Assembly: GCF_033153115.1 (NCBI RefSeq)
Contig: NW_026889751.1
Span: 21,824,001-21,888,000 of the forward strand
Reading direction: 5' to 3'
DNA length: 64,000 nt
From: Saccostrea echinata
Lineage: Eukaryota
A program made the position numbers and the translations under genes. Positions 7,477-56,420 of the stretch are shown here, piece by piece. Within the stretch, counting starts at the first letter, position 1. The number at the start of each line of letters is the position of its first letter. The notes beneath the pieces are model-generated. The model made no database searches and was not told the origin of the DNA. It saw only the letters and a list, made by a program, of their open reading frames with translations.

Positions 7477-10400
7477 TTATTTTGTCATTTCTTCAATTAT
7501 ATTCATCGCCTGAAATTGAAATTAATGTAAATATAATGTGAGTAAAAGCAAATCCTTAGGTTCTTTTTGAAAAAAAAAACAATTTACTGTACAAATGGTC
7601 ATATTGAAGGGCTATAGGTTTGATATTTTCAATGTTTTAGAACAATGACGAGTGGGAAGTTTAGCGATCTACTAGTATTTAACAGTGATCTTTAATAGTA
7701 TTGTGAAAATTGGCAAGTGGAAACTTTGACGATTATTAGAAATTCGTCAATTTCGACAACGTTTCTACATTGTCAAAGTTTCCACTATTATTTTCGTATG
7801 ATATATTTTCACAATGAGTTATTTCCCTAAACTACCATTTTGAAAGTGAGTTTTCTGATTTAAACTGAATTCAAATTAGTGTAGAAAGAAGATATTGGAA
7901 GCAATCTTTAAAATAATAAAAATACCAATTAAATGATTCTTTTACAAACGTTAACAATGTTTTCTACACGTCAATGATCATTTAATTCACGACCATCTAA
8001 AAAAATCTATTTATCTTTACAAGAATGATAAGCAAATCCTAGTTACCCATTTGTAAAATGTAGCGAGACCCGCACTGGAAACTCGTATTCTCTCTTCGTC
8101 GTATGGTCGTAGTATTTGAGAGGAGTGATTTATCATATTTTCAGTCACGTGGACAATGTCGAACTGACGTATGCGCCTTAACAACCCTTCTTTTCCTGTC
8201 CTACGCATCAATGTTTGTATCTGCTCCCATTCCTAACAAGAAATATTTCATAAAATACTAATAATTCAATTCGAATAATATTTTATTTCAAGAAATTCAT
8301 TTTTGTCATCCACCTGAACATGCCTTTCCTCTTCCCCTAGAAGGATGTATGTAGCCTTCATGACGTCATAAGCCATTGGTTTTGGGCGTTTGTAGTTGTG
8401 GATCTCTGAAATAGTTGTCTGCTGCATTTTTAGAATGTCGTGAGCAAATCCTTTCAGCCGTTGCAACTGCCCTAACAAATCCTCCGCTTCCTCAATCAGA
8501 AACTTAAGATTGGCTTCGTATTCGGATGATTTCGCATTTTCTATTGCTTCTTTTAGTTTCTCACCATGCCTTCTTGCAATGGCATCTATTAATTCTGATG
8601 AGACAAAAATATACATAAATGTATACCTGTTTTCCATCCAGATTTTCATTTATTTTCCTTTTTTGTAAATTTAGATTGATTTATTTTTTTATTACTAACA
8701 ACAGCTTTCCAACAATCTGTCTAGTACTTTAAATTAGAATGTACAGAGGATGGTGTTGACTGGGTTCAAGATGATACATAGTAATAAAATTTCATATCAG
8801 GTGAATCGAAACAGAGTTTGGTGTGAAAAAACCTAACAGATATCATCCCTTATACTACAAGACAATGTAAAAAAAAAGTACCCAACAGATGATAAATATA
8901 CAGGTATTTTTGTAAAATTCAAATGACTGGAAAGCGTATCCTTGCTTTAACCTGGTGATATTTATTTCTGTACTTTGAAAATAAAAACTTGAAATCTTCA
9001 GTTTGCTTTTTTTAAAAGAAAACATATCACATTTGATAACATGCAACCTTTGCGTTTCTCTTTGTATTTTTTTTTTAAATTAATTAGTTGAATCTTTATC
9101 TTTATCTTGCCCGCATCAGAGAAATTGCCTGCAGTAGTCTTGTGGTATGGTGCTTGCTTCGTGATAGGGAAGTACTGATTCCCTTTCCGGCGCCGCGTCC
9201 AACCTAAGACGTAAACATAGGCAGTGACTGGCAGTGCCAAGCGCCTGGCACTAGAAATGAAATTCATCTTGTGGATGAAACCTTAAAAACGGAGGTTCCG
9301 TGTCACGGTAGGCGTTGGCACGATAAAGAACCTTTACAGCTAAACAGCCCTAAGTATCTAGTATGGGTCTTAATTTGAAATCGGTATATGGTGACTATTT
9401 AAGTGATATATTCTAAAATGGGATGTAAAATAACTTACAATCTATCAATAATCAATAAAATGCAGTGTGATTGCTACCTTTACGCAGGTTTAGGTACGTC
9501 AGTCTTTCTTCTACTTTATGGCGATCACCTTTATCTTCCAGATCAACCTTATCGAAGTCATCAAGGACCTTTTGCAGAGTCTCTATATCATTGGAATGAG
9601 CTTTCTCTTGTAATGCCTTCCTGGCTCTTTTTTCTATTGCATTCTGTAAAAAATAAGGACAGTAAGAAATAAAAGGCATTCTTCAGTATCAATTGAGAAA
9701 TTTATATGCAAACCCTACTACCTCGTAGGGCTTCCGCTTTTGTTAATGTTTTCTGAGGTTAAAAGGTAGTTGCAGGCATTCACAAATGAACCACCGGAAT
9801 CTTTGTCTTTTGTGTTAATCTGGAGAGCATATTCTCCTTTCTGAGGCAAATTCACATTGATATCCAGCTCCTGGCCTTTTATCTTATGGTTGACGTGTTT
9901 CGTCAGCGTCTCTTGTTCCACATTATCGTGTATCAAGATTGTTTGGACTAGCACATTCTTAGTAACATTAAATGTCATATTGAAATTCTTTGTCTGTTTG
10001 ATATTGATGAAACCCGTTTTGTGAGATTGTGCTTTGAGCCCCGCCTCCTCCGTTTGGGAGTTTGGACCAAACCCAGACTCTGGATTACAAGGAAATGGTT
10101 TAACATAGTTAACATCCTCGTTACATTCAAGTTTGAATGCACAAAGAAGCAAGTAGTCACCAAAGATTTCCATCTTATATATACCTTCACTGGGAAACCG
10201 AACACGAAATCGCATTGAGTGTCCTTCATTGAATATAGCTACGTATCTCTCTAGCTGTATTTCAGAAGAAAGAGTTGTGCCTGATTCCTCATGGTTGAAA
10301 TACAGCTTGTATACGTAAGAACTTTCTTCCTTGTCTAACTTCTTTATCCCAATTTCGCATACTCCGCGAACTGACGTATATACACATTTTGCCGGTGTCG

Positions 10401-13239: not shown

Positions 13240-13320
13240 AAACAGGTAGAATCAGATGCATAGGAGTTAGCATTTCCTGTAAACTTGTCACAACCGTCGT
13301 GAGCACTACGTATACCTCAC
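13240..13320 (-). mobile_element. Degenerate 3' tail of a Penelope-like element
   Basis: The reverse complement GCTCACGACGGTTGTGACAAGTTTACAGGAAATGCTAACTCCTATGCATCTGATTCTACCT aligns by eye to 5635-5700. Confidence 0.55.
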
Positions 13321-13980
13321 GTTAAACGGAATAACGCATACTCAAAGATTAAAAAAAGAAGAAAAGAAAAAAAAACTATGTCTTAAGCATTGAAATAACT
13401 CAAAGAATTTATTAAAGTTTATTAAAAAGCTTGTCATACAAATGAAAAGACGAAACCTTGATCAATAGATGGTTTAGTTTAATCTCTCCTACCAGATCAG
13501 TTTGCTGTCTTTATTATATCATTGTACAAAATCAATTCTTCACATCAGTTTGAAAGTTTGTTGATGTTTAATTTTGACACGTATTTATTGTTGCGTTTAA
13601 GCATAACTATGTTCTAGTATTTAATGAAAATTGCTATTTTAAATACATTTTAAAAATTGTAAATTTGTTTTTAGGTCACGATTACAATTCTCGTGTTCAC
13701 AAAGAAGGATAACCCGTGTATGTGTTATCAGCCTTACTTATTTTACATTGTTCCTGGCAATAACATTATGTCAAGCTTTCACTTATCTAAATCTACGCTA
13801 TTTCTCGTCTTTGTCAGTATACCGTTAGCTGCTAAATTTTCATTTTATCCATAAGAATATGGTAAATGGTTTTTTAATGCATTCCAAGTTTAAACTACAT
13901 GTGTTTTGTGTAGTAATTCTATACACTTGTTAGCATACTGTGATGCAGAGACGGTATAAATAACTTTAATGTGCAAAAGT

Positions 13981-16900
13981 CTATATTTTTCTTTTGGTTA
14001 CATTTTCCTGGACTTCTCGATCTCTCGAAGAATTTTCTGATTTTCTTATTTCTTCAATTACATCCGTCGCCTGAAATAATTGTAAAATTATAAAGTTCAT
14101 GTATTTTTTTTTTTCATTACCAAAATAGGTAAAAGAGATCATTTGAAATCGATAAACACTTAAAGAATAGAGTAAATAGAGATACAGAGTCATTGTTACC
14201 CATTTGTAAAATGTTCCGAGGCCCGCACTGGAAGCTCGTATCCTCTCTTCGTCGTATGGTCGGAGTATCTGAGAGGAGTGATTTATCATGTTCTCGGTCA
14301 AGTGGACAGTGTCAAACAGACGCACGCGCCTTAGCAGCCCTTCTTTTCCCGTCTTGCGCATCAACGCCTGTATCTGTTCCCATTCCTAATAAAGAATACA
14401 CGTATTACTTAAGATAAACTTACACATCTACATGAGTAAGATCTGGTTTTAAGAAAATTTATGAATAAATGCCAACTGTACTCACCTCAACACGCCTTTC
14501 CTCCTCCCCTAGAAGGATGTATGTAGCTTTCATGACATCATAAGCCATAGGTTTTGGGTGTTTATAGTTGTGGATTTCAGATATAGTTGGCTGTTGCATT
14601 TTCAGAACCTCGTGAGCAAATCTCTTCAGCCTTCGAAGCTGTGATAACAAATCATCTGCTTCTTCAATCAGTTTCTTAAGATCGGACACATACTCGGACG
14701 ATTTCGCATTTTCTATTGCTTCTTCTAGTTTCTCGCCATGCCTTCTTGCAATTGCGTCTTTCAGTTCTAGTGATGTGAAACATGCACATATACGTTTTAA
14801 TCTTAATTCCCAATTTTCATAGATTGATAGTTTTTTTATATACTAGCACTATTATAAAATCATTTTGAATAATTTGTCAAAATATATTAACTTCCCTGTT
14901 TGTCTGCCTACACACTGAACAATCACAATGTAACAGTAGCTAAAATGTACTAATGCTACAAATTTAGTATTTGTGTACCTTTACGCAGGCTCAAATATGT
15001 CAATCTTTCTTCTGCCTTTTGGCGATCTCCTTTGTCTTCCAGATCAATCTTATCGAACTCATCAAGAGCCTTTTGGAGAGCACTTATATCATTGGAAGAT
15101 GTGGTATCTTGTAATGCCTTCCTAGTTCTTTTTTCGATCGCATTCTGTAAAACAAATAATGGTTTGGAAATGATGATACAATATTCTTCAATCTATGTTT
15201 AAAATGAAAGTAAAAACCCCTACCTCGTAAGGCCTCCGTTTTTTGTTCATGTTTTCTGAGGTCAAAAGGTAGTTACAGGCATTCTTAAATGAACCACCAG
15301 AATCTTTGTCCTTTGTGTTGATCTGAAGAGCATATTCTCCTTTTTGAGGCAAATTCACATTGATATCCAGCTCCTGACCTTTTATCTTATGATTCACGTG
15401 TTTTTTCAGCGTCTGTTGTTCCATATTATTGTGTAACAAAATTGTTTGCACTAACACATTCTTTGTAATGTTAAATTTCATACTGAAATTCTTCGTCTGT
15501 TTGATATTGATGAATCCAGTCTTATGAGACTGTGCTTGGAGCCCTGCTTCTTCTGTTAGAGAATTGGGACCAAATCCAGACTCTGGATTACAGGGAAATG
15601 GTTTTACATCGTTTACATCCTCGTTACATTCAAGTTTAAATTCACACAAAAGCGAATAGTCACCATAGATCTCCATCTTATAAATACCTTCACTGGGAAA
15701 CCGAACACGAAACCTCATAGAAGGCCCTTCATTGAATACGGCAACGTATCTCTCAAGCTGTATTTCTGAAGACAGGGTTGTCTTTGATTCCTCGTGATTA
15801 AAATACAGCTTGTATACGTAAGAACATTCCTCCTTGTCTAAATTTTTTATCCCAATATCGCATACACCACCAACAGACGCATAGATACATTTAGTCGGTG
15901 TTGTAATTTTATGGTGATTCTCAAAATAGTTTTGTGTACAATATGCGATATCTATAAAGTCCTGTTTGGTAAATGGCTTTGTAAGCAACTGCCATTTTGA
16001 GTCAAGGGGAAAACATATATAGATGAACTCTTCTGCCTCCGTGAAGAAGAAATAGTCGTTTATATGGCTGATTGTTTGACCTGATGATTTTTCTTCTTTA
16101 TCTCTTGCACCTTTTCCTGAATTATTTAACAAATAAAGTGGTTGCTTTCAAAATGCATATTACGTTCAATATGTCTAATAGAACGACTTTTTTTCACTAA
16201 AGAGAGTAAAATTTCATTTATTTTAAATAAAAATAAACAGTTTAATCAGTATAACATACAAATAATCTCTCTTTTTTCTACTTTTTCTATCATTACGTTT
16301 TATACCTTGGGTTTCTACTAGAGTCCATGTACCCTTTGAGTGACCAACCACTGCTGAGAAAGCCCAAAGTGGAAACACAAAGTGCCACCCTCCAGCTACA
16401 AATACTGCTGTCCATGAGTTGTTCAGATTGTCAACATTTTTGTCACCTACCTCGTAGGACACGCTCTTCCCAAGTCCACGTATAAGTACAGACGGAATTT
16501 TGGCAGCCCTTGATTTGAAATTGTATTTTAGAACATATATATCACTTGTGTACCTTTAAGTTATATTTGCAAGTACAATTTTTAATGGTCTTTCTTGCGA
16601 TCTCTAACTCACCTACATAGGCTAATAAATAAGAAATTGAACGAGAGTTTTCTTTGTATAACTTGTTGTATAATGGTTTTGGGTGAAGTTACATCTTGGC
16701 TTTTATTGTCGTTTTTACTCGATTTGTTTCCTTTTGACCCTTGTAAACCAATCCAGGTGAAGATTGCTCGCACTTTTTGCACGTCATTTGTTAATCCTTC
16801 CGTCAGAGCACGTGCTATGTCATCAAGGGTCTGATAATCCTCAACTTTTATCTAAATAACAAGAGTTGTCATACACACCGCTGAACAAATAACACTTAAC

Positions 16901-18697
16901 GTATTTTTGGAATACAGATAACATTGTCCCACTCTTCATCGAAACCAATCGATATAAGGTTAGTTATACCTGCTCTTGATCTGTAGAAGGAACATTGATG
17001 TTTAATTGCTGCAAAATTGCCTTTTGGTTTTATATTATTTTATAAAGGAGAGAAATAAATTGCAACATCTTTTATTTTTTTAAATTTTAATATCTATTCT
17101 TAGATAAAACTTTCAGGGGTGAAAATAACCATTTTACTTTAAATCTTCACTTAGACATTTAAATCAAAGTACAATGAAAAGCTAATCAATACGTGTTTCT
17201 ACCAAAATGGATTCACTATTTATATACAATCTGCACTACTAGTTAGTATTCTATCTAGCTTGAAAATGAATAAATAATATTTCTTTAACATTTCAGAATT
17301 GTTCATATCGAAGTTCACTGAAAACCCGGGAAGGGAACATGCGCCGTATATGGTGTTTAAGAAATGTACAGTGAAATAACACATTCTTCTTAATTAGGTA
17401 CGAAAATCAGATTGAAATATGTGATAAGTTGGTAAAAAAAACATAAAACCTTTACTAACATTTACATTGAAATTTATCACATTTACTTCTGTTCTATTTA
17501 CATATCTGACATCAATAAGTAAAGATTTCAATCAACCAGGATTTCCAACATCTGGAATACAAGGCTAGATTTATAATCCCAGTATTATTTGAAAAGATTA
17601 TCATTTCGCTGATACTTTCTATCCAAATAGCTTTTCATGCAATTTATATGAAATTTTCAAATCACTGAAAATGGTGGGGATATAATGTCTATATGTGACT
17701 CATCTCTACCTCAAAGACTGCGAGGACCTATCTTCCCTCTCACCCTCCCTACACCCCTCTGAAATTTAAGTTGGTAGCATAAATAATGTATAATACTTTA
17801 AAGATCTGATTGTACACATTCTTCTTCCTCAATTAAACATTATATGTATATTGTAGTAACATATATTTTTTCTTCAAATTTGACAATTTTTTAAACCAAG
17901 GTAATTATTTTATGCATTCTTTTTACTAGAAGATCAAAAATACCTGATTTGCTCTTTCATCCGCAGTATTTTTATCTTGTTCTGTAAATATATGTTCTTT
18001 TCTGTTAGAACTTGGTTTTGGTGGCGGGTACCCCACTACTATGTCCTCTAAATCTACCTGTAAGATTTACAAAACAAGATGGAAAGCGAGACGTGGTAGT
18101 TGCAAAATATGGAGTAAATGAAATTAATAGCCCAAAAAATTTTTTCTACATCTCTGATGGGAAAGGAAAAGTTGATTTCCTTTGAGGTAAATTTTATTTG
18201 TTGTTTTAAGAAGCATTAATTAGCACATAATGTGTTAGGAAAAGTTCATTCTTGAGGCTTCCGACTATGTTTTGCACGTTTAGTACCATTTCTTGCATTA
18301 AAAATTAAGTAACAATGAACACCGAGTATTACTATCCCGAAGACTTCCTTTGAAAGAAATAGGCGTACTCTTTTGATTCCAGACTGCTTTCATATGCATG
18401 CACCCATCTAATAAATAACCCACAACATGTCTGAATCGTCAATAATTTGGCCTAAGAACATTACATTTATTAAATCATTGATATTAGGTACTTCAACTGT
18501 TATGCATTTGCAAACACGTACAAGTTTTTAATTAAGGAAATTACCGAGTCATTTTCTGGTTCTCTCAAATAGTCCTCCTCCTTTTCCTTAGGTTTACTGT
18601 CGACCCCCTTTCCTTTTGGCTTCTCATGACTATCCCTTCCCCCGGGTTTTTCATGACCATCATCGGTTTTTGTAGACGTTGATCCTCCACACCCCAT
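13981..18697 (-). CDS. Paralog C: hillarin/KY-like protein with dynein-MTBD-like C-terminus
   Basis: Nine coding exons: ~18545-18697 (MGCGGS...), 17945-18057, 16614-16850, 16306-16509, 15223-16115, 14979-15144, 14486-14766, 14200-14385, 13981-14070. Reading frames are consistent across junctions. Confidence 0.88.
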
Positions 18698-18990
18698 GAG
18701 GCTTTATCCTTAATGCGAGCAATTCTTCATAAAAATAAACTTTAACAAGGACTGAGTTGTCAGAATTGAAGAGAAAAACTGTTTGCTTGTCCAGGACTGA
18801 ATCAAATGTCTCGTTTTCACCGCCTACCCTCTTGTCGTGGAGAAGAATTGTTTACTTAAAAAAGAATTGGTTTAAATATCGAGAGGGCTCCATCTAGAGA
18901 CTGAGAAATCTATTTTAATTATAGTTTCCAAAAACTTCTAATATCAAGATTTCGTTAGATGAATTTTGTCAAGAGAAAAAAAAATCTCAC

Positions 18991-19312
18991 CTGGTCTGTG
19001 ATGTTTTTTGCAGGAGAAGGGACGGTATCCAACCATCCATTGACATAATATTTGTTTGAATCATGCAGCACAAGAACCGAATGATTATCGACGAGAAAAA
19101 GGACTATTATTAAATAAATATTCATGACTCAAGACGAGTATTTAAGCGTGTGTATTCCTGGGGTTTTCAGTTTAATGTTTAATTGCCTGTCTCTTCAATT
19201 TTTCTCCTCAATACGCATTCACTGGATTTTAAATACGCATTTATGGATCGCGTAATGAGTGCAATATATCATTACCTAATCAAAGGTGTATTGGAAATAT
19301 GATTAAAGATAA
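18991..19312 (-). promoter_or_regulatory. Non-coding first exon and core promoter of paralog C
   Basis: Donor GTGAG at 18990; GAGTATTTAAG at ~19136; ATATGATTAAAGA at ~19297. Confidence 0.5.
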
Positions 19313-19617
19313 GATTAGGAGCTCACCAAACCGCATCATGTTGCCATTTTTCCTCACTTACTACTTTGCGTCATTTACCATACTGTAATTATCCTGCAAG
19401 GGTCGAAACTCTCAATTTTACCAATTGAGAGAAACCTTGTGAAGTATTCAGCAATTTATAATGAAAATACAAGTATATCAAAACTTTATTAGTGATACAT
19501 ACATTAATGGATTCATATTTCTAAAAATTCACCAAGAAAAGGTATAAAAGTATCAAAACAAATTCACTACTTCTTAAACTTCTTATAATTTATTCAATTA
19601 TTTTAGTTACTGTAATT

Positions 19618-19759
19618 NNNNNNNNNNNNNNNNNNNNNNNNNNNNNNNNNNNNNNNNNNNNNNNNNNNNNNNNNNNNNNNNNNNNNNNNNNNNNNNNNNN
19701 NNNNNNNNNNNNNNNNNNNNNNNNNNNNNNNNNNNNNNNNNNNNNNNNNNNNNNNNNNN
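19618..19759. other. Assembly gap (N run)
   Basis: Run of N. Confidence 1.
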
Positions 19760-20135
19760 TGGGGAGCAGATCGAGTAACAACTTTTTATAAAATCATGAA
19801 TTAATTAATAGTTAATGGTGAATGAAAAACAAATTGAAACATTATAACAACCATTCAGACTTCATATTAAACACATTTTTAAAACTTATATTTGTAACTT
19901 TTGTGTATGTTATTAATAAATAATTTTTCACTCAAAGCAATAAAAAAATAACTTCTCAATTACTATGTGCACATTCCAACACAATCACAAATAGATCGGG
20001 CGCTGCTTCGGTCGATAATAATTTGTTAAAGATTACAAAATGAAACCATGAAATACAAAAGTCCACCTAATGGACTGATGAATGAAAAACTTTTGATTTT
20101 TATTTCATAAATGGTGACGAAGACTTAGGGTCCTG

Positions 20136-20300
20136 GGGGTCGTGACATAAAGCTTGCTTAGTTTTTGACTTAAGTAAGGTCATAATTATGTTTTAGGTGC
20201 AATCTTAGGACCTGCCTAAGTACTACTTAAGTATGTCGTTAACCGTAACAAAAAGTGGACTTAGCTAGGTCTTAATTAGTTAAGTCAAACTTATGTTCAA
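20136..20300 (+). mobile_element. Orphan left end of a PIF/Harbinger element
   Basis: GGGGTCGTGACATAAAGC... is near-identical to 21097-21260 and is preceded by CTG. The empty site (GTCCTG|CTCTG) is visible in the paralogous sequence at ~5939-5949. Confidence 0.8.
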
Positions 20301-20654
20301 AATATTTTTTTTTCACTTATACAATGTACATATATTTGTAAAAATGATTTAGTAACGTTTTTAATTACACATATAATAAAGTTGAAGTCCTTACCTAATG
20401 GTTTTAGCTAGATTAGATTAGATTTCGTATCAAAAGTATATAATTCTGTTTATTCTGAATATTTGAAAACAAATATCGCACGGTCATATAGTGGCAATAG
20501 TGATTCATTGTAAATGCGTGAACATTGTTTATCACTCGAGACTGGGATGTTTTCAGTTTCCCTTTTGCTGTTATTCTTTTGTTTTGACAAATGTTCACTT
20601 CCTTTCAAATTGTCATTCGAACGTCTATGTACTTGAAATTGAAACAATAATAAT

Positions 20655-20938
20655 TTAATCCTGGTTATAACGCCGTATTTGATTGGATAAAATTTTTTAC
20701 TTTATATCGTATAAATTGGGTTGCCTACGTCACAATGACTTGCGTCAAAAACGTATCGATCCGCTTGACGTTACTTTTAAATTTTGTACAAATTGAAGTC
20801 ATTTTTAAGGGCAATCAGCGTTTTTCTTACACTAAATGAATCAAAATTAAATTATAAGGAATGAAATTAATAGCTACCCAATTTATAAGGTATAAAGTGG
20901 GTTGAAACAGTTTACGCTTTTTTTATAAACCGCTTCGC
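20655..20938. mobile_element. Truncated Crypton-like non-autonomous repeat
   Basis: Contains TGATTGG/ACGTCA-type motifs and an internal inverted pair (TATAAATTGGGT / ACCCAATTTATA). It stops at ATAAACCGCTTCGC, the typical centre of a hairpin. Family assigned from memory of mollusc repeats. Confidence 0.4.
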
Positions 20939-21444
20939 ACTTTTATCATTCACATGTACATCGTAAGTTTTCTATTATAAATTATGTGATCTAATTAAAC
21001 TCACCTACAGAGGCTTAAAATAAGAAATTGTACGAGAGATTTCTTTGTGCAACTTAATGTACAATGATGGTGGGCGAATTGACATCTTAGTTTCTGGGGG
21101 TCGTAACATAAAGCATGCTAAGTTTTTGACTTAAGTAGGGTCTTAAGTAAGTGTTAAGCACATTTTTAGGACCTGTCTAAGTACTACTTAAGTATGTCTT
21201 ATACCGTAACATAAAGCGAACTAAGCAAGGTCTTAGCTAAGTCATTCTTATGTATTGAATTAAAAAATTACACAGTATGAAAGTACATCAAGTAGCGTTG
21301 GTTATTACATGTGAGTGTGATATGTACTCACAGACTGAATATTTTTATGTCTTGAATCACGCCTGGCTATTGTCACAATTGTCCCAAGGGACAAATCTGC
21401 CACGGTCTTTTTCACTGGGATTTGCTTCTCGTTTACGGAAGATA

Positions 21445-21592
21445 ATGGCTCGAAAACCAAATTTTTCCAGTCTGAAAATCGAAACTTTGATAGAAGAATT
21501 TCAGAATCATAAAGAAGTGCTTAATTCTTCGTTTAACAACACTTCTACAAACGCATCAAAACAAAGAGCATGGGCCAGTGTGGTATCAAAGG

Positions 21593-21627
<35 letters not shown>

Positions 21628-22746
21628 TAACGCTGATTACGGAAAATTCAGTTATATGCATAATATGGTGTTTTGAATGCCGTATAGTTTTCCAAACATT
21701 TNNNNNNNNNNNNNNNNNNNNNNNNNNNNNNNNNNNNNNNNNNNNNNNNNNNNNNNNNNNNNNNNNNNNNNNNNNNNNNNNNNNNNNNNNNNNNNNNNNN
21801 NNNNNNNNNNNNNNNNNNNNNNNNNNNNNNNNNNNNNNNNNNNNNNNNNNNNNNNNNNNNNATTTTATGTTTATATACATATTCTTACATCATAATTTAG
21901 GAAGTTATTTTTTTTTTAAATCTTTAAAATGAAGGTAAGCTCGGTAAGTGGAGTGATGCGAACGGCCGAAGATGTTAAGAAAAAATGGAGGAATGTTTCC
22001 AGCGACTCAAAGAAAAGGTTATCGTATGCGAGGAAGGAGGCTACCAAAACAGGAGGAGGGCCATCTTCAGCAGTGGAACCGAGTGCGACAGACGTAAGAG
22101 TATTGGAGACAATGGGACAGACAGCAACAGAAGGAATTCCTGGAGGAATAGATACAGCTGGCCCATCTTCCTCCAATACAAGTCTTCAGGAAACTTTTGT
22201 TGCTGATAGGTAATAATCAATGTGTTTTTAAATTTATAAGATAAATGAATTTTCACCATGACACAATATACTTTTATTCCCAAACAAATATCATAAGTGT
22301 CTTTAATTTACATTGTTTCCATTCAGCGACCAACAAGAGAGTGTGATAGAATCCACGTCAAAGAACACTTCCAGGAAACGGAAAAGATCTTCAGGAAATG
22401 ATGAGGCACACGACCTAGTGGAAATAGAAAGGGAGAGATTAGAGGTACATTTGATGAAAATATCAGTACTGTATAATTCTTTTTTTCTGAATGAATATTA
22501 TTTTCCACGAGTACAATTATAAAAGCAAGTACAATATACAAGTTATTATTGTCATATGTTTTTTACTTATACTTTAATAGGTAGAGAAAAAAAAGGCTGG
22601 AATTAGAAGAAAGAAGACTAGATCTGGAACAGAGAAGATTTGATCTGGAGGTAGAGAGGCATTCCAGGGGGTTTATGGTGTGTGACTCTCAAAAAGTGCT
22701 TAAGTACTATATTGTACCTGCAGGCTTTACGGATTTTATGTCATAA
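21445..22746 (+). CDS. Harbinger Myb/SANT-like DNA-binding protein
   Basis: Exons ~21445-21591 (MARKPNFS...KQRAWASVVSK), 21935-22209 (RTAEDVKKKWRN...KTGGGP), 22328-22444 and 22581-22746 (coiled-coil LELEERRLDLEQRR). An A8 run at 22587-22594 appears to carry one extra base. Confidence 0.8.
21702..21861. other. Assembly gap (N run)
   Basis: Run of N inside a Myb-gene intron. Confidence 1.
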
Positions 22747-22748
22747 AA

Positions 22749-23732
22749 TTAAATAAATCTTAAGGCAACGCTTTCCCTTGTTCTTCTTCTGTCATTCATT
22801 GCACCATTATAGCATAGGTCATCATTATCCTGTGGATGAAGTACTTCGGACTCAGGCAACTCTATTCTGTGATTGATGCACATGTTGTGCAAAACCGCTG
22901 TCGCTACTATCACCTAAAATTTGAAGATTTTGTCAAATCATAAAATTGGATTTTAAAAGTATACATTTCATATTTCCATAAAACTATTGGTTTATACCTT
23001 GCATGCTTTCGAAGGATGAAATAACAGAGGACCTCCAGTTTTATCCAGACAGCGAAAACGACCCTTCCACACGCCGAAACATCTTTCAACAGAGTTTCTT
23101 GCTTTCATGTGATAAGCATTATAGCGATGCTCCGAGGGAGTAGAAGGCTGTAAATATGGGGTCATCATTCAATGGTCTAAGTGGATATGCTGAATCACCC
23201 AAGAGCCATCCCTCGCTAATTTCACCTATATAAAATATTCATACCGCTATTAACATTATAAAATATATATCATGTTGTGAGTGAAATGTTAAATAACGTA
23301 TAAAAAGTAGGCACGTAGTATTGGGGGGGGGGGGCATGAGGACCCCCCCACACACACACACACTTTCTTTTCAAACAGAACATTTTACTTTTTTATTGTA
23401 TCATACCTTAGTCATGGTAATTTCTTAATGTTTTAGAAAAATATTGGGTTGAAAAAGTTGGAACCCAACACCACCATCCTCCTTGAAATAGAGATTTTGC
23501 GCCCACATTTTAAAAAATGATAAACGATACTATGTCCCTGCATAATACTATTCATAAAGTGTGTGTGTTTCTTTTCTTCAAAGAATGACATTTTAAATTA
23601 AATTTTATTAAATTCTCTAACACAATCCCTTCTTCAATATTAAACAAGAATGAAATATTCATAAAACTTTTATCAAAAATACATTCAATTTTATAAATAA
23701 TAATTAATGGTGCTTTTCATATAAAAGTGTTT

Positions 23733-23818
<86 letters not shown>

Positions 23819-24517
23819 CACGAGGCAATACGCTCTAGTACATTTTGTTTTTATCAGGAATAGAGTACATGTATATTATTACATACCGGATTCAAACTTT
23901 GTTGAAAGAGCACTGTCTGTCCATATGAATGAGTCATGACTGCTCCCTGGCCACTTTGCGACGATGTTTGTAAATTTCAGATCGGCGTCGCACACCCCCT
24001 GAACATTTATTGAGTGAAAACATTTTCTATTTACATACAAATGTTCATCCTTACTAGGTGATCTTATAGGGATGTGTGTTCCATCAATACATCCCAAAAC
24101 ATTGGGAAATTTAGACAGTTGATAGTATTTTTGCATAACATAGATTTTATCTGCATTAACAGAAGGAAACTTGATAAAATCACCCGCATGTTTATTGATG
24201 CTACATGACACATCATCAAATATTCGAGAAACGGTCATTCTCGACATCCCCTGGGAATCGCCCAAAACGCTGAAAAAACTACCTGTAGCGTAAAATCTCA
24301 ATGCAGTCAATACCTGTGACGAAACACTGATAGCTTCATTTCTCTTCGTTGGTCTTTCCAAGTCATCTCTGACCAATTCACACAAATTTTCAATTAGATG
24401 TCTGTCTAAACGATACCTTTCTATCAAAGATTGGTCATCATAATCATGTAGATTTTCTCTGGTCTTAAAACTTCTTTTTTTCCTCCCACTTTGTAGAAAT
24501 ATATAAGCCGCCGCCAT
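22749..24517 (-). pseudogene. Harbinger (HARBI1-like) DDE transposase, frameshifted
   Basis: Exons ~23887-24517, 22998-23225 and 22749-22913. Motifs ALRFYATG, GCIDGTH, WPGSSHDSFI, LGDSAYPL, VERCFGVWKGRFRCL and LHN. A +1 frameshift at ~23170 follows YPLRP. Confidence 0.9.
23737..23815. repeat. (AT)n microsatellite
   Basis: Perfect AT run in a transposase intron. Confidence 0.95.
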
Positions 24518-24993
24518 TCGTGCAATAATTGTGTATTCAAACTTTACTTTTAACATCTATTGTGAATAGTGTTTAAATGTCTTTATTCACAGACCTCTGA
24601 GTACTACTCACAGTTTCTAAGTGTGTTTATCAACTTTACCTGTCCTCGATTTATAATTATAATATGTACATACATGTACATATGTGTTTTTGCTTAATGA
24701 ACATGTTTATATTGCTATATACTTGTATAAACAGGACATAATGACTCTTTACTCACTTGAAGAGGTATTAGTGTATCTTATTAAGTAGTAGCAAATGAAA
24801 TACGTACTGATTGTTTATAGTTATTTTAACAGTTTTCTGTATGATGTGTTAATGTTATGTCTAAAACCTACTTAAGTCACCTATGTTGATCGCCTAAGTT
24901 TTGCTAAGATTTGTAATTCTTAGCATCCTTTATGATACGGACTTAAGTCAAAAAACGTACTTATGTCTTACTGAAGTATGGTCTTAGACTTAA

Positions 24994-38693: not shown

Positions 38694-41558
38694 AAATAAC
38701 ATGAATGGTGTAAACTTCCTGGAGCTGATTATCTATCAGTAACTTTTTATTTGATAACAATGAATACCTCGTAGGTTCGGTGTTTCCTTTCCCCTTCTTG
38801 CGCTTCCAGTAAATAGTTACAAACATTTTGAAATTCTCTGTCTTCTTTCCCTTTCGTGTTAATCTGTAAACCAAACTCCCCTTTCTGTGGGATTGCCAGT
38901 CCAATGCATAGTTGGTTCCCTACCACCCTCGTGGAGACAAAATCCTTCAACTGGTGACTTTTCATATTGTGGTGAACCAGTTTAGTTTGTACTTGCACAT
39001 ATTTTGTCATTGTAAATTTTATTTCCGTTTCCCGTTTGCTATGAAAGCTTATAAAACTATCATGGTGTGTTTCAGCCTTCAGTCCTGCGAGTTCAGTTTT
39101 AAAATTTGGACCAAATCCAACATCCGGATTACATGGGAAAGGTTTAATGTCCACCCTCGCATTTTTGCATATGAGTTTGAATGAACACAACCATGACATA
39201 GCATCCCCTTTTAAAATCCCGTGAACGTCAATTTTATAAACTCCAGGACTAGGAAATCGAATATTGAAAGCCACTTTACCATTCTGGTTCAGTACAGCTA
39301 CGTATTTGTCTAACTGAATTTCCGAGGAAATCGGGGAGCCCGACTCTTCGTCATTGTAGAATAATTCATACGTCATCATTATGTCTTCGATGATGGAACT
39401 CTTTAAGCATATGTTGCACAGCCCGTCCTCAGAAATCAGAACACACTTGGGTTTACTTACAATCTTTACCTTAAAGTCAAAGAAAGATGGTCGGCAGTAT
39501 GGCATCTCTACAAATTCATCTTTTGAGATAGGTTTTCTCAGTAGCTGCCACTCGGGGTTGTCCGGAAAACATCGGAATACGAACTCCTCTGCATCGGGCA
39601 GGAAGTAGTAGTCATTAAGTGTACTGACACTTTCTCCTGTGGACGCTGGCATCTTCTCCCGAACTCCTTTACCTTTAGAATACAATAGCTAATTTAGTAG
39701 TACATACATGTCAAACAACTGTAGGTTGACAACGATAAAGACTTCAAAACAAGAGTATTAGCTTACGCATACCATTCACCTCTACATCTCCACAATGTTC
39801 AGAATATTTACGATTAAATATCTTACATTTGGTTCATAGGCATTACAAACAAGATTTTAAAATAGCGCCTTTCTTTAAGAGAGAGAAACCTTTTGCTTCC
39901 ACAAGAGTCCATTTTCCTGTGCTATGTCCAACCACTACCCTACACGCCCATAAGGGAAAGACAAAACGCCATCCGCCATTTACGTAAACTGCATTCCACA
40001 TGTTCCGGAGATTTTCCAGTTCTGTTTGGCCAACTTCATATCCAGCACTCTTAGCAAACCCATGGATAATGGCACAAGGAATTTTCGCTGCTCTATGATT
40101 AAAATAATACAGTGCTCCGTATAAATAATCAAATGCATTTACACTTGAAATCAATTTATCAAAATAAGCTTCACATTTACCGACAAAGTAGGGTGAAAAT
40201 CGTGGTATATGATGATTTTCCTTCTTTCATGCGTTTCAGGATCTGCATTGGGGAATTGATTATCATATTTTCAGGGAATTTTATTTCTTGAACATTCTGT
40301 CCGATGACCCAGGAGAATATCGCGCGAACTTGTTGGACGTCACGTGACATTCCTTTCGTTAGCAATTCTGCGAGATCTTCAAACGTAGTTGCATCTTCTG
40401 GTTTAATCTGAAAGTTTTCCCTGATATGTAGTCGAAATTAAAATTAAAATTGAATATATCAATGGCAGTATCTAAGAAAAAAAGGTGATTACCACAATCT
40501 TTCTTTCATGGTACATTTTTAAAATAAATCACCTTTTTAGCTCTTTTATCTCCCTCGGCAATATCAGCTGCTCTTAAGATGTCTGACTTCCGGTTTGAAG
40601 CCGGTTTCGGAGGAGGATAACCATCTTGTACAACAGGTATGTCAATCTGAAACAATCCACAAGAATATAATTTAAGGTATTTTAAAAAGATAATCAGTAA
40701 ATATTATGGAACATCTTTGCAAACATTTTTAGATTTATTTTTTACAAAAGGACTTTGTTGTTGTGGTTATATCAGTTACTGACGATGTTTATGAATATTT
40801 ATACATGTTAATACTAGTATTATGATATTAGGCCTACGTTAAGAAAGTAAAGAAACCTATCAATAAGTGTATGAACATGTCTCATACTGATGTCAAAATA
40901 CAGGTACCAGTATATTGGCATTATTTCCGTAGAAAAAATTAATTAAAATGTAAGCTTGATATATCCATGTATAAATAAACATGCATACAGGTACCTTGAT
41001 TATAATTTTAATGGATATATTCGCCAATTACGAATTGTGTTCTCGCTTACCTTTTATTATAATCATCTTAATAAATACCAATATGACGGGATACATTAAA
41101 GAACAAAGTCTTATCAAATTAGATCTTCTATCATTGAAAAAATTACTTGAACATTTGGAGAAACGTGATATGCATCATACAAGGTAGAAAAATATTTCAT
41201 GTATCCCTCCATTGCTCACTCTAAATACTTTTACTTTAGGTACTGAAATATGTAGATAAATGGCATCTATTCAACAATCGATCTTTCTCTTGGAAAAAGA
41301 TCCACCTACTTTGATCCATCCCTATATTTCCTTACCGGAACTTACCACATCATCAGTGTTTTCTTGGAGGATGTCAATGTAGTCAGGGATATCGAGCTTT
41401 TCCTCTGCCTCCTCCTCTTGTGGGGGTCCCAGAGATTGTGGACCTTGTTCAGCCGTTTTCCGTGAGGACGACCCACCCACGCCTTCAGTGGGCCCCCGAG
41501 GCTTTGCTTCCTCCGGACTCGTGTTCTGTTTTGCAGGTTTACTAGCGCCGCCTCCCAT
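36903..41558 (-). CDS. Paralog E: divergent hillarin/KY-like protein with dynein-MTBD-like domain and acidic tail
   Basis: Exons ~41346-41558 (MGGGASK...), 40533-40646 (GYPPPKP), 40181-40407, 39890-40092, 38768-39676, 38420-38585, 37627-37907, 37277-37462, 36903-37143. Confidence 0.85.
37931..38011. repeat. (AT)n microsatellite
   Basis: Perfect AT run in an intron. Confidence 0.95.
38651..38692. repeat. (AG)n microsatellite
   Basis: Perfect AG run in an intron. Confidence 0.95.
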
Positions 41559-42214
41559 AATAGTCCCGAAATTTTAACACTAAAAAGAGTAATTTTCAAC
41601 CAAAAAATTGTACTCAACCATATGCAAAATGAAATATTAGATATGAAATATTTACTCTGAAACCGACATCTCAGAACCAAGAATTAAGTAGAAGAAATAC
41701 CATGCTTACCCCTCTACAAACTGGATCATGTACATGTACCACTAATTCCAATGTATATATTTCTCTTTAAAAACAATAATCTTTTATCAATTATGTATGT
41801 CTTTTGTTGTTTTTAAATGATCATGATTGAGGGATTTAATTGACTTGGTACAGGGTTTTATCATTTTGTTGTTCTTTTTTATTGACTTTTGAGACATTAA
41901 GTAAATCTTGGGTTTTATTCTGTAAAGCCGACTGTTAATATTGACTGTTCTATGTCTTTGTAGCATAAGGAATGGGGTTTATTAGCTTTTCAATTAAATC
42001 GATTGGGCAATTAACAATTTTCTTAAGTTTTGGTTGGTTTGAACTATTTTTTTCATCGATTGTGTTGACTTGGCTGATCCCTATCTCGATCTAGAAGAAA
42101 GATCTTTGCGACAGATCGAGCACGGCTTTGAAGTTATTTTAGGACAGGCAATACTGCTATAATGCTTATGAAACACATCATATTAAATACCCTCGCTACA
42201 ATAAAAAAAAAAAA

Positions 42215-42700
42215 TAGGACTTTTGGTTGTAAATGATGCAAATATCAAATTCCTAAAATATTGAGAGATGTAGGCTTTCCATGATGTTCAAATTTCGACG
42301 TAGCCGAAATAAATCTATACTTTTTATCACTTTATAGAACATTATTGAGAAATTTGGAAAAAGAAATACCCATATCTGTGGCTAAGCAAACATATATACA
42401 TTTTACTTTATATTTAAACATATTAAATTCAGTATTTTGTCTAACAGCTTTGCTTTAAATATTTATCAAGGACAAATGCAGCAAGCAAATAATAAATAAA
42501 TAAATAAATAGATGCTTAGATTGATGTATATTTTTGGACCTATTTTGATTGTAAATGATGCAAATATCAAATTTCTTAAATTTTAAACTTTCTCTGGTGA
42601 TCAAAATTCTACCTTTTTACTGTCACTCTTACAAATGTATACAACTTTTCATTACTTTATAGATCATTATTGTATAAACTTTGAATGAAACATTAAAATC
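42215..42700. repeat. Local degenerate direct duplication (~320-bp period)
   Basis: TTGTAAATGATGCAAATATCAAATT occurs at ~42227 and ~42549, and the downstream sequence (...ACTTTATAGA.CATTATTG) is also alignable. Confidence 0.65.
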
Positions 42701-44184
42701 TATGCGGCATAACTTATCATTTTAGTCATATAAACATGGCTTTAGTTGTTACTAGTATTTTCATGATTTTTTTAAAAGTTTGTTTGTATCATCTGTCTTT
42801 AACATATACTTGAACTTACCCAATCTCAGGTTGAACAATGTTATTGATAAATATTAAATGACGCCTAGTTTGTTCGTGAACCTGTTGACAAAAAATTACT
42901 ATTTTACATAAATTGATTTTGTTATCTCTTATTTTTCCAGAAAAATTAATATGCGGTAATAATATTCCTTCCAAAGTTATACCACATTTCCGAATATATT
43001 GAATTTCTATAATGCACAGTAAAGTATATGTTCATTTCCTGCAATTTACTACAAGGGGCAGTATCATATAAAATGGAAGATTCCCAAATTTAGCATTTGT
43101 GTGTTGGATGGGGGATGGGGGTAAAATGTAGACGTTGATGTCCCCCCAAAAATTGACTGATATCTGCATCAATAGTATTAAACTTTAAAACTCGGTTAAT
43201 TCATGTGTTTTCACCTATACATATATATCATGACATGTCCATTTTAAGTAAATAGATGCAAGTCTTCCTAAGAAAAGAGTGATTTAAAACTACTTTGGAG
43301 TAACAATATAAACAATCCCTCTTAATGTGCTACGTAAGAGTAAAATTAATTAATCTTAGTAAAATTATTGAAAATTCTTTTTATATGAAATAAAAATTCG
43401 ACATTAAACTATATTAATTCTGTAATTTTTCTCGAATTATTCGACGTTGTTTATTACATTGTTAATCAGATGTTAAGCGCAGCAATAAGTTTAATAATAG
43501 AACGGACCAGGAACATGATAAACTGTGCCCAAACAACTTACCTTGGTTACTTAAGAGGGAATCAAGTGACGTCACATATAGAGGGTTGACATCAGACCGG
43601 AAGTGCTTCACGACGGAAGTGTTGCACAACTCAGCTCGAGTTTGGAAAAAAAGATCGGAAACTGAGATATGTGTTGTCATAAAAATCGATTTCAGGTATA
43701 GATTTCTAATTTTCTATCAACCTGTACAGCTTCTGATGATCTGGTTTTTTAAATAATTTAATCGACAGGTGGATAATGATTTTTTTTCTAGGTCCTGAAA
43801 TTGGGTATACTTGTTTCCATTCGATTTCCTTTCATCAATTCATTTAAAATACAAAAGTATGTTACAATGCGTACATAAACATTCATAGGTTTAATAACTT
43901 ATACGGAAACACATTAACAAGTTCAGATGATTTTCAATGATTTATTTCGCTTTTTTTTATTATAACTCTTCAATGTTTGGAAATGTCTTTCATTAAATTT
44001 CATCATAAAAATTAAATTACAATAAGGAAAGATGAATTTGTAATGGATGTACAGCTTTTAAATAAGTATGAACAAAAATAAACATTTAAGACCCAAGGAA
44101 TCGAAGAACGAAAATTGAAACATGACACGCTGTAATGTTATACTGAATAATGTCAGAATAGTTCGATATTGCATGATCTGTTCG

Positions 44185-47100
44185 TCATTTATTGGATTTT
44201 TTGGTTTTGGACACTACTGTTTCAGGGGGTGGATCAGGCTCTTTCATCACCTTCTGAATCTAAGAAGAGAGGAAATCAAAGTACTAGAAGTATTGTTACA
44301 CAGTGGACATTATCTTTTAATTTACATTTGATATTAAATGCAATTTTTGTCATAAGATTACATTGAAAAAAAAAAACACCATTTCTACTGTTAGTGATTT
44401 TTCTTTCAATTGCAAGTGTATCCTTTATATATTCACTCAAATAATTATAATAATTGACAATCCAATTGAACAGAAATCGTAACATGTATTTCCAAAAATA
44501 ATTATAATTTTGATCAACCCTAACAAAAATATGAAGTAAACTACAGTTTACAGTTATAGTTTATAGTTAACTACAGTACCAAAGGTTTTGCTAAAAATAT
44601 TTCATTCTTTTAAAAAAAAATATCTAAATTATCTCTTAGTAAACATTCTACTTTTTTAAAGGTTCTTGATGAGGTGTGCAAAAAATATCACAGAATTATT
44701 TTACTAAAACAAAATGCTTTTATCTGAACACTCACCCACACAAAGAAAGACGCTGCGCCTGCGCTGGTCTTTCTCACGTCATCTTCAGTAAACCTCATAA
44801 ACATATTTTGCGCTTTGGTTTTCACCTCTTCTGGTACATCATCAATATTAAACCTTTGAAACCTGTGTAGAAGACTATTTTTTCCGGTCTTTCTCATCAG
44901 ATTTTGAATGTACTCCCAAAACTGAAAAAGGTAAATCACAGTGTTGTCATAATAATTCAGGATGAGGAAAGAGAAATATAACTAAAACAACTAACTATAT
45001 TTTTCAAATGTTTACATTTTCCCCAATCATTTTTCAGATGAAATAAATAACCTTGAGATCTTCCTCTTTTTCACCTAGCAACAAGAAGGTGGCAATCATG
45101 ACGTCATGGACCATCGGAAGTGGGCTTTGGTAGTTCATCAACTCCGCTATGATTGGTTTGTTGAGGTCTGGAATCGGGTGCTGGAACCCCTTTAGACGGC
45201 GTAACTCGGCCAAAAGATCTTCTGCTTGTTTAATCAGTGTGGTCAGGCGGTGCACATATCCCGACCCCCGGGCCATCGAGATCGCCCTGACTAAGCAAGG
45301 ATCGTTTCTTCTGTTGATTGCATTTATCAAAGCTGTTGTAAGAGAGTTAAAATAAATTAAATAAATAATATTAAATAAAATAAAAATGAAAATACGTTTT
45401 TTTTTTGTTTTTTTTTTTTTTTTTTGTAGTATTAAATTAATTATGACCATCTTTTAATTTAACATATCATATATTCGTACAGATTTTTATGACCCTTTCC
45501 TTTTTTTTCGAGCACATATTGATTCAAATCAAATTTTGACCATTAATTAAACGACAATTTAATGAACAACATCTTAGCAGCGTATTAGCCTAAGAGCAAT
45601 ATCTTTATCGACTGAGCTACTAAAACTAAGACGACATTATACATGTAAAACAAATCTAAGTTTTAACGTGAATTATCGCGAACAGGATGTCATTGGCGAA
45701 TTGTGCATAGTTGCATATGATAAAGGGTTAAACATTCATGTATTGACCTTACTTTGTTTGACCTCCAAAAACTCTAGCCTAGTGCTGGCTTTCGTGTAAT
45801 CCCCGCGGTCCTCTAATCCTGCATTGACAAACTTATCAATGGTCACCTTTAGTAGATCAATGTCCTTCACTGCAGTGGCCTCCTTGACCCCCCTTCTCAA
45901 CAGCTTCTCTCGAGCATTCTGTAACATACAGAACGCATTGAAATGTTTAAATAAAGGTATAGAAATTTCATAGATAATGTAATTTTTTACCAAGCATAAA
46001 CTTAAGTGTAAAGCGCTTGTTGCTTACATTCTTTGCAATGAATTTAGGTATATTAATTTAATTCAAGTTGGTCAACACAAGATATAAATGTCTTGTCACT
46101 GCATACAAGGAATACTTTCGCCCCCGTTTTTATCTTTGTCCGTTTCGCCATCGTCGTCAGTGGGCAAATTCAAAATGAACTCAGCTCAACAACGGAGTAT
46201 GGGTGGATTAAAAACAGGACACATTCGTTTGTAAGTGTGATTAGGGCGAAAAAAAACACGGGGGCGAAAATAAGCCTGTTTACATTACTTATGTTTGTAC
46301 CTCCCAGCCCTTCCTCCTTTTGGTTGAGGGTCTTGGGTCCTCCGTACAGATCATGTAATTGCAGATGTTGTTCATCTCTCCTCTCACATCTTTAGGCTTA
46401 CCGTAAATTTTGATTAAGTAGTCTCCGTGTTGAGGAATTTTACCCATAATATCTATCCTCCCAACGTTCTTCTTGCAATAAAATCTTTCCTTTAATTCAT
46501 TCTCACTTAGAAGGATGTGTAAGAACTTGACTTTAATGCTAAGGTAAGTTTCTGTCATAATTGTAATGTGAACTTCTTGATGAGGTTTCATGACGAGAAG
46601 TCCTGATTTCTGTGAGGGGTCAATAAGCCCACCCTTTTGAGCCTCGTATGAATAACCAAGACCGATCCATGGCGCGTCGGGGAAAGGTACACAATTTTCT
46701 CGCGGATTTTCACAAATAAGGCGAAAATCGGCAATCCATGGAACATTTTCTCGGTCGACATGTCCACCAAAAATTGATAGTTTATACACACCTGGAACTG
46801 GGAATCTAACAATGAAAGTCCAAATATTATCATCATAGTTCATAATGACATATTTGTTCAGTGGTGTTTTATTGTCAAGGTCAACCTCAGACTCGTCACG
46901 TTTGAAAAGTAGGTCATAGTTCATTTGTGTTGGGTAGTCATCGGGAACTCGGAACGCGATTTCAACAACCCCATCAATATCGTGTAAGATACAGCTTTGT
47001 TCGGTGATAAGCTTCAAACCAAGTCCGAAATATGCCTCTTGTAGAAATGGAACGCGGACAAAGCGTTTAAGGTCATACGGAACCGTCAAGAGCTGCCATT

Positions 47101-48971: not shown

Positions 48972-56420
<7,449 letters not shown>

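Follow-up and report, generated by a model that had tools for sequence, protein, structure and literature searches.

A homologue of the dynein microtubule-binding domain at the C-terminus of KY/hillarin-like proteins in a Saccostrea echinata gene array

The 64-kb stretch of Saccostrea echinata DNA analysed here (the window; positions 21,824,001-21,888,000 of its contig, C2, in a 923-Mb assembly) has the base composition of AT-rich invertebrate DNA and carries on its minus strand tandem paralogs of a single gene family, in which a KY-like (kyphoscoliosis peptidase/hillarin) scaffold is followed by a C-terminal module. A reading made from the sequence alone had proposed that this module is the dynein stalk's microtubule-binding domain (MTBD), without a motor and fused to a lipid-anchored scaffold. 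The locus raises the question of whether a domain that has so far been treated as part of a motor occurs here on a different kind of protein, and what it might do there. We find a dynein-type MTBD at the C-terminus of an expressed, constrained KY scaffold that bears a lipidation motif. The closest database relatives of the family are bivalve 'hillarin-like' proteins (Pinctada, Pecten, Crassostrea). Coordinates are those of the window unless stated otherwise.

The terminal module and the dynein stalk tip

Five minus-strand paralogs (B-F) carry the terminal module, as located by tblastn with the three terminal exons of paralog E. With splice sites refined, the antepenultimate exon (n-2) is 281 nucleotides (nt) long with start phase 1 in all five paralogs, and the penultimate exon (n-1) is 186 nt long in all five. 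Each of these ten exons is bounded by an AG acceptor and a GT donor and is free of internal stops (Table 1). These identical sizes, splice sites and open frames bear out the sequence-only reading in its claim that the three last exons of B-F form one conserved module, and the peptide strings it quoted for F and B are present in the sequence.

Homology was evaluated with single exons or database relatives as queries. The window exons were not significant alone, and a profile of the n-2 exons (A2) was therefore used to gather relatives. It retrieved 566 cluster representatives at E <= 1e-3, among them the protein P0018 at 1e-24. The Pfam dynein stalk family PF12777 ('MT') matched P0018 with 24.6 bits, above its cut-off of 24 (E = 1.6e-5), and also matched P0035, P0032 and P0076 at 2e-4 to 9e-4; all four matches cover profile positions ~98-210, which correspond to the end of the first coiled-coil arm of the stalk (CC1) and the MTBD. 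When a profile of 14 small relatives (A3) was compared with all PDB sequences, 28 of the 32 matches at E <= 1 fell on the MTBD of dynein heavy chains (best 3.2e-8). The profile A4, built from 23 hillarin-like proteins, likewise found the dynein MTBD over positions 606-713 (best 1.5e-7); over exon n-1 its first member, P0176, shares 71% identity with paralog C. The motifs aligned in the A3 and A4 searches are P-P, LLG, W, (F/Y)D, S-x-A/G and W, in the same order in family and dynein. Aligned to yeast dynein by HMMER, the family shares conserved residues with dynein in all six helices, and the hallmarks originally listed for the module fall in register with those of dynein.

The sequence-only reading had suggested structure prediction and a Foldseek search as a check, and this was run on the homologue P0018. 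Its AlphaFold model has a predicted local distance difference test score (pLDDT) above 90 over residues 100-330, and its top Foldseek matches were all dynein stalk or MTBD structures, including 6kjo with a template modelling (TM) score of 0.70 and a root-mean-square deviation (rmsd) of 2.2 Å. By VIA, the model aligned with the mouse dynein MTBD (3err_A) at Z = 16.7, with an rmsd of 3.7 Å over 143 residues. Thirteen VIA rows lay at Z >= 10.6, after which the score fell abruptly to 7.2 at the next unrelated fold. A scan of 48,161 representative chains, independent of Foldseek, agrees with the dynein MTBD match. The model of P0176 has the same helix pattern (pLDDT ~90), and the six-helix bundle H1-H6 is predicted in the homologue models. 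With a 731-residue KY-type model as query, Ig-like and FAP246 matches took up the VIA list, which thereby did not probe the module, and Foldseek listed a single dynein chain, 7k58_C, at E = 3.8e-6.

Together the A3 and A4 matches, the PF12777 match of P0018 and the predicted fold uphold the proposed kinship: judged by profiles and models, the module is a true homologue of the dynein MTBD, and we regard the homology as established. The homologous part is the last ~115-125 residues, encoded by the closing part of exon n-2, then exon n-1, then the opening codons of the last exon.

The MTBD model also matched several other chains. The Chlamydomonas radial-spoke chain 7jtk_C (residues 457-610) has the same fold at Z = 12.7 over 147 residues, and 7jrj_I matches likewise; we suspect 7jtk_C to be RSP2. 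Two further chains not labelled as dynein, 9fqr_Xl (residues 1344-1496) and 9e5c_2e (residues 146-427), matched at Z = 10.6 and 7.8, and neither 7jtk_C nor 9fqr_Xl was detected by sequence. Finally, 9ya2_L (residues 1207-1457) matched at Z = 9.5, with an rmsd of 3.1 Å over 122 residues; from its size and numbering we take it to be the globular domain of Toxoplasma ICMAP2. If so, it offers a non-motor protein with a small helical domain of similar shape, although the two have no detectable sequence similarity and the Z-score lies within the range of chance helical-bundle matches. The ICMAP2 globular domain sits on the outer side of intraconoidal microtubule 1 every 8 nm and binds between protofilaments as a dimer; it is not called dynein-like, and dynein appears only in the reference list (PMC12819142). 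These model-based matches suggest that MTBD-like domains without a motor may be more widespread than annotated. The likenesses in ICMAP2 and axonemal chains hint at motor-free microtubule-associated proteins of MTBD type across eukaryotes, which, if true, bears on the origin of dynein's MTBD.

Expression, scaffold and the missing stalk arm

Paralog E is covered by spliced contigs from four sequencing runs (X1-X4) in two studies, and all eight of its GT..AG joints match the gene model to the base (introns 37143-37276, 37463-37625 and 37907-38419, and five more joints upstream). The RNA label of these runs is a guess and the origin was judged from contig structure: the contigs are read as RNA-derived because they lack introns with GT..AG ends. 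Two of them, of 2.4 and 2.6 kb, span E from its first coding exon to its 3' end by way of the Ig-like_KY exon and the three module exons. The coding sequence has 845 codons including the stop (36903-36905, re-read by hand) and no internal stop, giving a protein of 844 residues. In one X3 contig (37905-38767) exon n-2 is joined straight to the large exon, and the 166-nt exon 38420-38585 is skipped. If real, this would shift the frame, and it may represent an alternative or an aberrant splice form.

The ratio of nonsynonymous to synonymous substitution rates (dN/dS) in the module exons is 0.12 between B and C and 0.14 between B and D, a sign of purifying selection on these exons. C and D arose by recent duplication (dS = 0.06), and synonymous sites are saturated in the comparisons with E and F.

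The scaffold belongs to the KY/hillarin type, as had been proposed. Ig-like_KY (PF23265) was recognised on window exons at E = 3.9e-44 (E) and 1.6e-39 (F), and Transglut_core (PF01841), weak on one window exon (E = 0.039), is clear in full-length relatives, reaching 1.8e-9 at best and found in 21 of the 23 members of the hillarin-like set. Relatives are publicly named 'hillarin-like' or 'kyphoscoliosis peptidase'. The family differs from KY and hillarin in adding the C-terminal helical and MTBD-like module and an MGxxxS start; vertebrate KY is not known to have such a tail. On visual inspection, F has a Lys (..EGKASYASLF.., in 47519-47809 and 46292-47374) where the catalytic Cys of a transglutaminase would stand, a position that looks unconserved in the A4 consensus, and the His seems to be substituted too. 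Judged by these residues, the KY scaffold is possibly a pseudo-enzyme.

Among solved structures, FAP246, a protein of the Chlamydomonas central-pair C1 microtubule (7n6g_6E, 7sqc_X0), is the sole sequence relative of the KY scaffold. It matches the TGc plus Ig-like_KY scaffold of the relatives at E = 1.1e-15 and with Z = 16.6 over 396 residues, and the parts of the window that match it are the exons 39846-40154 and 38768-39672. FAP246 is itself a microtubule-associated ciliary protein. It is an algal protein with a different N-terminal region, and its sequence does not match the MTBD-like module. The kinship hints that the KY scaffold has long been linked to microtubule structures.

At the opposite end, the proteins start MGCGGS (C and D), MGGGAS (E) or MGSNSS (F), and relatives start MGAKSSK, MGCSLST or MGCG. 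The N-myristoylation consensus is a Met-Gly start with a small residue at position 6 (MGxxxS/T). The proposed lipid anchor is accordingly matched by the MGxxxS motif in four of the five paralogs, but not in B, for which a first exon was not found. In C and D the Cys within the MGCGGS start is a candidate palmitoylation residue.

In dynein, two antiparallel stalk arms, CC1 and CC2, flank the MTBD, and the insertion site lies between AAA4 and AAA5. The long helices claimed to flank the module exist on one side only. Upstream of the MTBD there are ~100 residues of helix, modelled in P0018 as helices 89-113, 117-129, 137-160, 163-174 and 183-207, and the best structural matches of its residues ~86-201 are spectrin repeats (weak, Z ~7). 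The final upstream helix continues into H1 in the manner of CC1 in dynein. On the downstream side the second arm is missing. B and D stop 10 residues past the last Trp, F stops after 24 (prolines appear after the first 7) and C after 29; in E the tail measures 79 residues, mostly acidic and probably for the most part disordered. Relatives end 7-16 residues past the last Trp, and the P0018 model of the small gastropod type has ~28 helical residues there. Since the protein ends so soon after this Trp, the KY type lacks a two-armed stalk, keeping a CC1-like helix without CC2. Nor is there a motor context, as Pfam recognises Transglut_core and Ig-like_KY and no AAA modules. The family thus resembles the dynein stalk tip (3err, 6kjn, 6rzb) in its six-helix domain and its CC1-like entry into H1, and differs in the absent AAA+ motor, in the position of the domain at the C-terminus of a putatively lipid-anchored scaffold and in several tubulin-facing basic positions that are not kept.

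Among relatives, sampled as named clusters, the module occurs in several settings. The KY type (~750 residues, KY scaffold plus module) comprises 'hillarin-like' proteins of bivalves and a limpet; a small type of ~330 residues in gastropods has an MGCG start and little besides the module; a CARD type in amphioxus combines TGc, five Ig-like_KY domains, CARD and the module; a TMIE type, module plus TMIE, is known from one metagenome-derived model; and various other architectures occur in tunicates, a sea cucumber and a coral. Annotated examples of the KY plus module architecture itself come from scallops, oysters, a limpet and amphioxus. The module behaves as a mobile domain, since it stands alone behind an MGCG anchor in gastropods and behind CARD in amphioxus. 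Whether the fusion had been described was left open in the sequence-only reading. A full-text search, with most subscription journals outside it, turned up no publication on KY/hillarin proteins with an MTBD or on dynein-type MTBDs without a motor, but a few small relatives are already tagged automatically: 4 of ~34 carry PF12777, and one UniRef entry is named 'Dynein heavy chain coiled coil stalk domain-containing protein'. The hillarin-like type has no PF12777 tag in public databases.

A possible membrane-microtubule tether and its alternatives

In the model we propose, each gene encodes a cytoplasmic scaffold of ~750-850 residues made up of an MGxxxS anchor motif, a transglutaminase-like core, Ig-like KY domains and the C-terminal helical module. 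The lead-in helix is the counterpart of stalk arm CC1, preceded by helix pairs that in the homologue model weakly match spectrin repeats, with the CC2 return arm and the entire AAA+ motor absent. The MTBD-like domain would bind the outer surface of the microtubule, as dynein's does, and binding would be constitutive rather than ATP-gated because there is no two-armed stalk to shift register. With a lipid anchor at the opposite end, the membrane and any KY-bound partners would be held against microtubules. We consider a lipid-anchored KY scaffold with a dynein-type MTBD, serving as a static membrane-microtubule tether, the best explanation of the locus and a reasonably probable one, and we rate microtubule binding by the module, taken by itself, as somewhat favoured. 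Conservation across all six helices argues for binding. So do the microtubule-associated relative of the scaffold, FAP246, and the shape-alike non-motor domain on a microtubule, 9ya2_L, if it is ICMAP2 as we take it to be. Net charge was considered as a proxy for tubulin binding and dropped, as a hand count on the yeast dynein MTBD gave only about +2.

Several observations weigh against this explanation. On the side of homology, exon n-1 of E alone matches PF12777 weakly (E = 0.076, profile positions 140-181), so that the Pfam check suggested for the module was passed by the relative P0018 but not by the window exon; a profile of the window n-1 exons (A1) found no match in PDB; A2 found three dyneins among 11 matches there, at a non-significant E = 0.36-0.67; and PF12777 matches only 1 of the 23 hillarin-like relatives. 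The fold evidence comes from models of relatives that are 40-70% identical in the module, not from the window's own joined protein. On the side of function, in the alignment to yeast dynein the family has non-basic residues opposite the two dynein lysines of the CC1/H1 junction, and a Glu opposite the dynein Arg that follows the Trp of H3; we take these lysines and this Arg to be tubulin contacts in dynein. Paralog E also lacks the Arg before the S-A-G motif. The position of H1 sets the affinity of dynein, which is commonly attributed to sliding of the two stalk arms, and without CC2 this position is unconstrained. Fold alone does not prove function, because the radial-spoke chain 7jtk_C shares it and may make no microtubule contact in its complex. 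Lipidation, finally, is a motif match only.

The strongest competitor draws on the same observations. A true homologue of the dynein MTBD might have been re-used for a non-tubulin partner, such as another cytoskeletal or scaffold protein, in which case the family would consist of membrane-anchored adaptors unrelated to microtubules. The loss of basic residues at several positions aligned with the tubulin-facing ones of dynein, the fold of 7jtk_C and 7jrj_I in a chain that may not touch the microtubule, and the disappearance of the affinity switch together with CC2 are all consistent with such re-use. What speaks for tubulin instead is that the residues shared with dynein span all six helices, that the domain taken as ICMAP2 sits on a microtubule, and that FAP246, the sole solved relative of the scaffold, is a ciliary central-pair microtubule protein. 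We judge re-use for another partner unlikely, while still a serious contender.

A likeness to dynein arising by convergence of small helical bundles, or as an artefact of coiled-coil composition, is far less probable and already largely refuted. Middling structural scores are common among helical bundles, and the window exons fall below significance alone. Against this, two independent profiles (A3 and A4) find little other than dynein heavy chains, matched where expected and at E = 1e-7 to 1e-8, the Pfam cut-off is passed by P0018, and the Z of 16.7 exceeds that of the first unrelated fold by 9 units. Least credible of all, and close to negligible, is that the module exons form a separate gene or a mis-joined model rather than part of the KY-like genes: fused public models do occur in the family (Pinctada P0001 joins three tandem copies), but single contigs of 2.4-2.6 kb lead from E's first coding exon through the Ig-like_KY exon to the three module exons, and gene annotations of scallops, oysters, a limpet and amphioxus show the same architecture.

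The tether model would have consequences beyond this locus. The dynein MTBD appears here in an expressed, constrained and expanded family with one arm and no motor; if it binds microtubules, it would be a natural 'unregulated' MTBD with which to ask how much of binding is intrinsic to the six-helix bundle. Marine invertebrates would then have a new type of microtubule-associated protein, encoded in this genome by at least 27 genes, and the KY/hillarin scaffold, which is linked to muscle disease in vertebrates, would be connected to microtubules. Routine annotation misses the module, given that a single one of 23 hillarin-like proteins touches PF12777. The family suggests an undescribed kind of static membrane-to-microtubule tether. 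More tentatively, and with rather less confidence than we place in the tether itself, the dynein MTBD may not be exclusive to dynein and may exist as a free-standing, mobile microtubule-binding module that animals joined to lipid anchors, KY scaffolds and CARD domains, forming a large, unstudied class of static membrane-microtubule tethers.

Gene models, array and neighbouring features

The sequence-only reading had counted six genes, which proved an undercount. The 62-codon module exon (n-1) is present in at least 27 copies in the genome, of which at least 16 (one with a stop) lie in a single minus-strand array of ~152 kb at 21,716,919-21,868,921 on contig C2; window positions 8047-44921 are the right end of this array. 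Eleven further copies are dispersed over contigs C2, C9, C22, C54 and C60. Within the window the sixth copy, paralog A, is partial. No homologue of exon 1 (with its MG.. start) was found upstream of exon 2 of paralog B in the region 11562-13900; B may use another start or be truncated at its 5' end.

Table 1. Positions of family exons and other features in the window
Feature	Position	Strand	Description
Paralog A, partial sixth copy	3-403 + 1323-1934	-	5' exons alone inside the window
B last exon	7477-7509	-	AMNIIEEMTK, then stop; 10 residues past the last Trp
B exon n-1	8047-8232	-	186 nt; MTBD helices H3-H6 (EWEQIQ..SSAGLATFYKW)
B exon n-2	8314-8594	-	281 nt; helical lead-in and MTBD helices H1-H2 (..TISEIHNYKRPKPMAYDVMKATYILLGEEERHVQ); AG/GT, open frame
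B exon-2 homologue	11562-11686	-	homology to family exon 2
C last exon	13981-14070	-	29 residues, then stop
C exon n-1	14200-14385	-	tblastn, splice sites
C exon n-2	14486-14766	-	tblastn, splice sites
C first coding exon	18500-18697	-	starts MGCGGSTSTK, myristoylation/palmitoylation-type motif; 3' end not fixed
Two assembly gaps	19618-19759, 21702-21861		between first exon of C (ATG 18697) and last exon of D; outside every family exon
DDE_Tnp_4 (Harbinger/PIF-type) transposase open reading frame	23882-24556	-	Pfam E = 8.5e-15; C-D spacer, just right of both gaps
D last exon	31544-31576	-	ARNVIEEIRK, then stop
D exon n-1	31696-31881	-	tblastn, splice sites
D exon n-2	31982-32262	-	tblastn, splice sites
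D first coding exon	36031-36161	-	starts MGCGGSTSTN; 3' end approximate
E whole coding gene	36903-41558	-	nine coding exons; 844 residues; starts MGGGASKPAK
E coding exons	41346-41558, 40533-40646, 40181-40407, 39890-40092, 38768-39672, 38420-38585, 37626-37906, 37277-37462, 36903-37142	-	spliced contigs
E last exon	36903-37142	-	~17 residues past Trp read as helical (no prediction on E itself), then acidic, disordered-looking tail
E exon n-1	37277-37462	-	186 nt; spliced contigs
E exon n-2	37626-37906	-	281 nt; spliced contigs
E large exon	38768-39672	-	Ig-like_KY (PF23265), E = 3.9e-44
F last exon	44185-44259	-	IQKVMKEPDPPPETVVSKTKKSNK, then stop
F exon n-1	44736-44921	-	186 nt; tblastn, splice sites
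F exon n-2	45052-45332	-	281 nt; tblastn, splice sites
F large exon	46292-47374	-	Ig-like_KY, E = 1.6e-39
F coding start	48600-48702	-	MGSNSSAQGS; exon end not fixed

In the stretch between C and D that holds both assembly gaps, tblastn found no match to KY-like exons. Because the gaps interrupt no module exon, their continuity is irrelevant to the finding.

Two simple repeats lie in introns of E: a long (TA)n run at 37931-38000, ~25 nt upstream of the exon n-2 acceptor, and a (CT)n run at 38640-38701 in the next intron. On the plus strand, an open reading frame of 223 residues at 4902-5570 contains a ..FRYIDDVL.. motif and looks like the reverse-transcriptase fragment of a retroelement, with no Pfam match at E <= 0.01. 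On the minus strand, an exon at 55890-56420, part of 48972-56420, matches Orn_Arg_deC_N, a domain of decarboxylases dependent on pyridoxal phosphate, at E = 4.9e-17. Elsewhere in this genome, the tubulin loci are all split by introns, near codon 57-63 or after ~200 codons.

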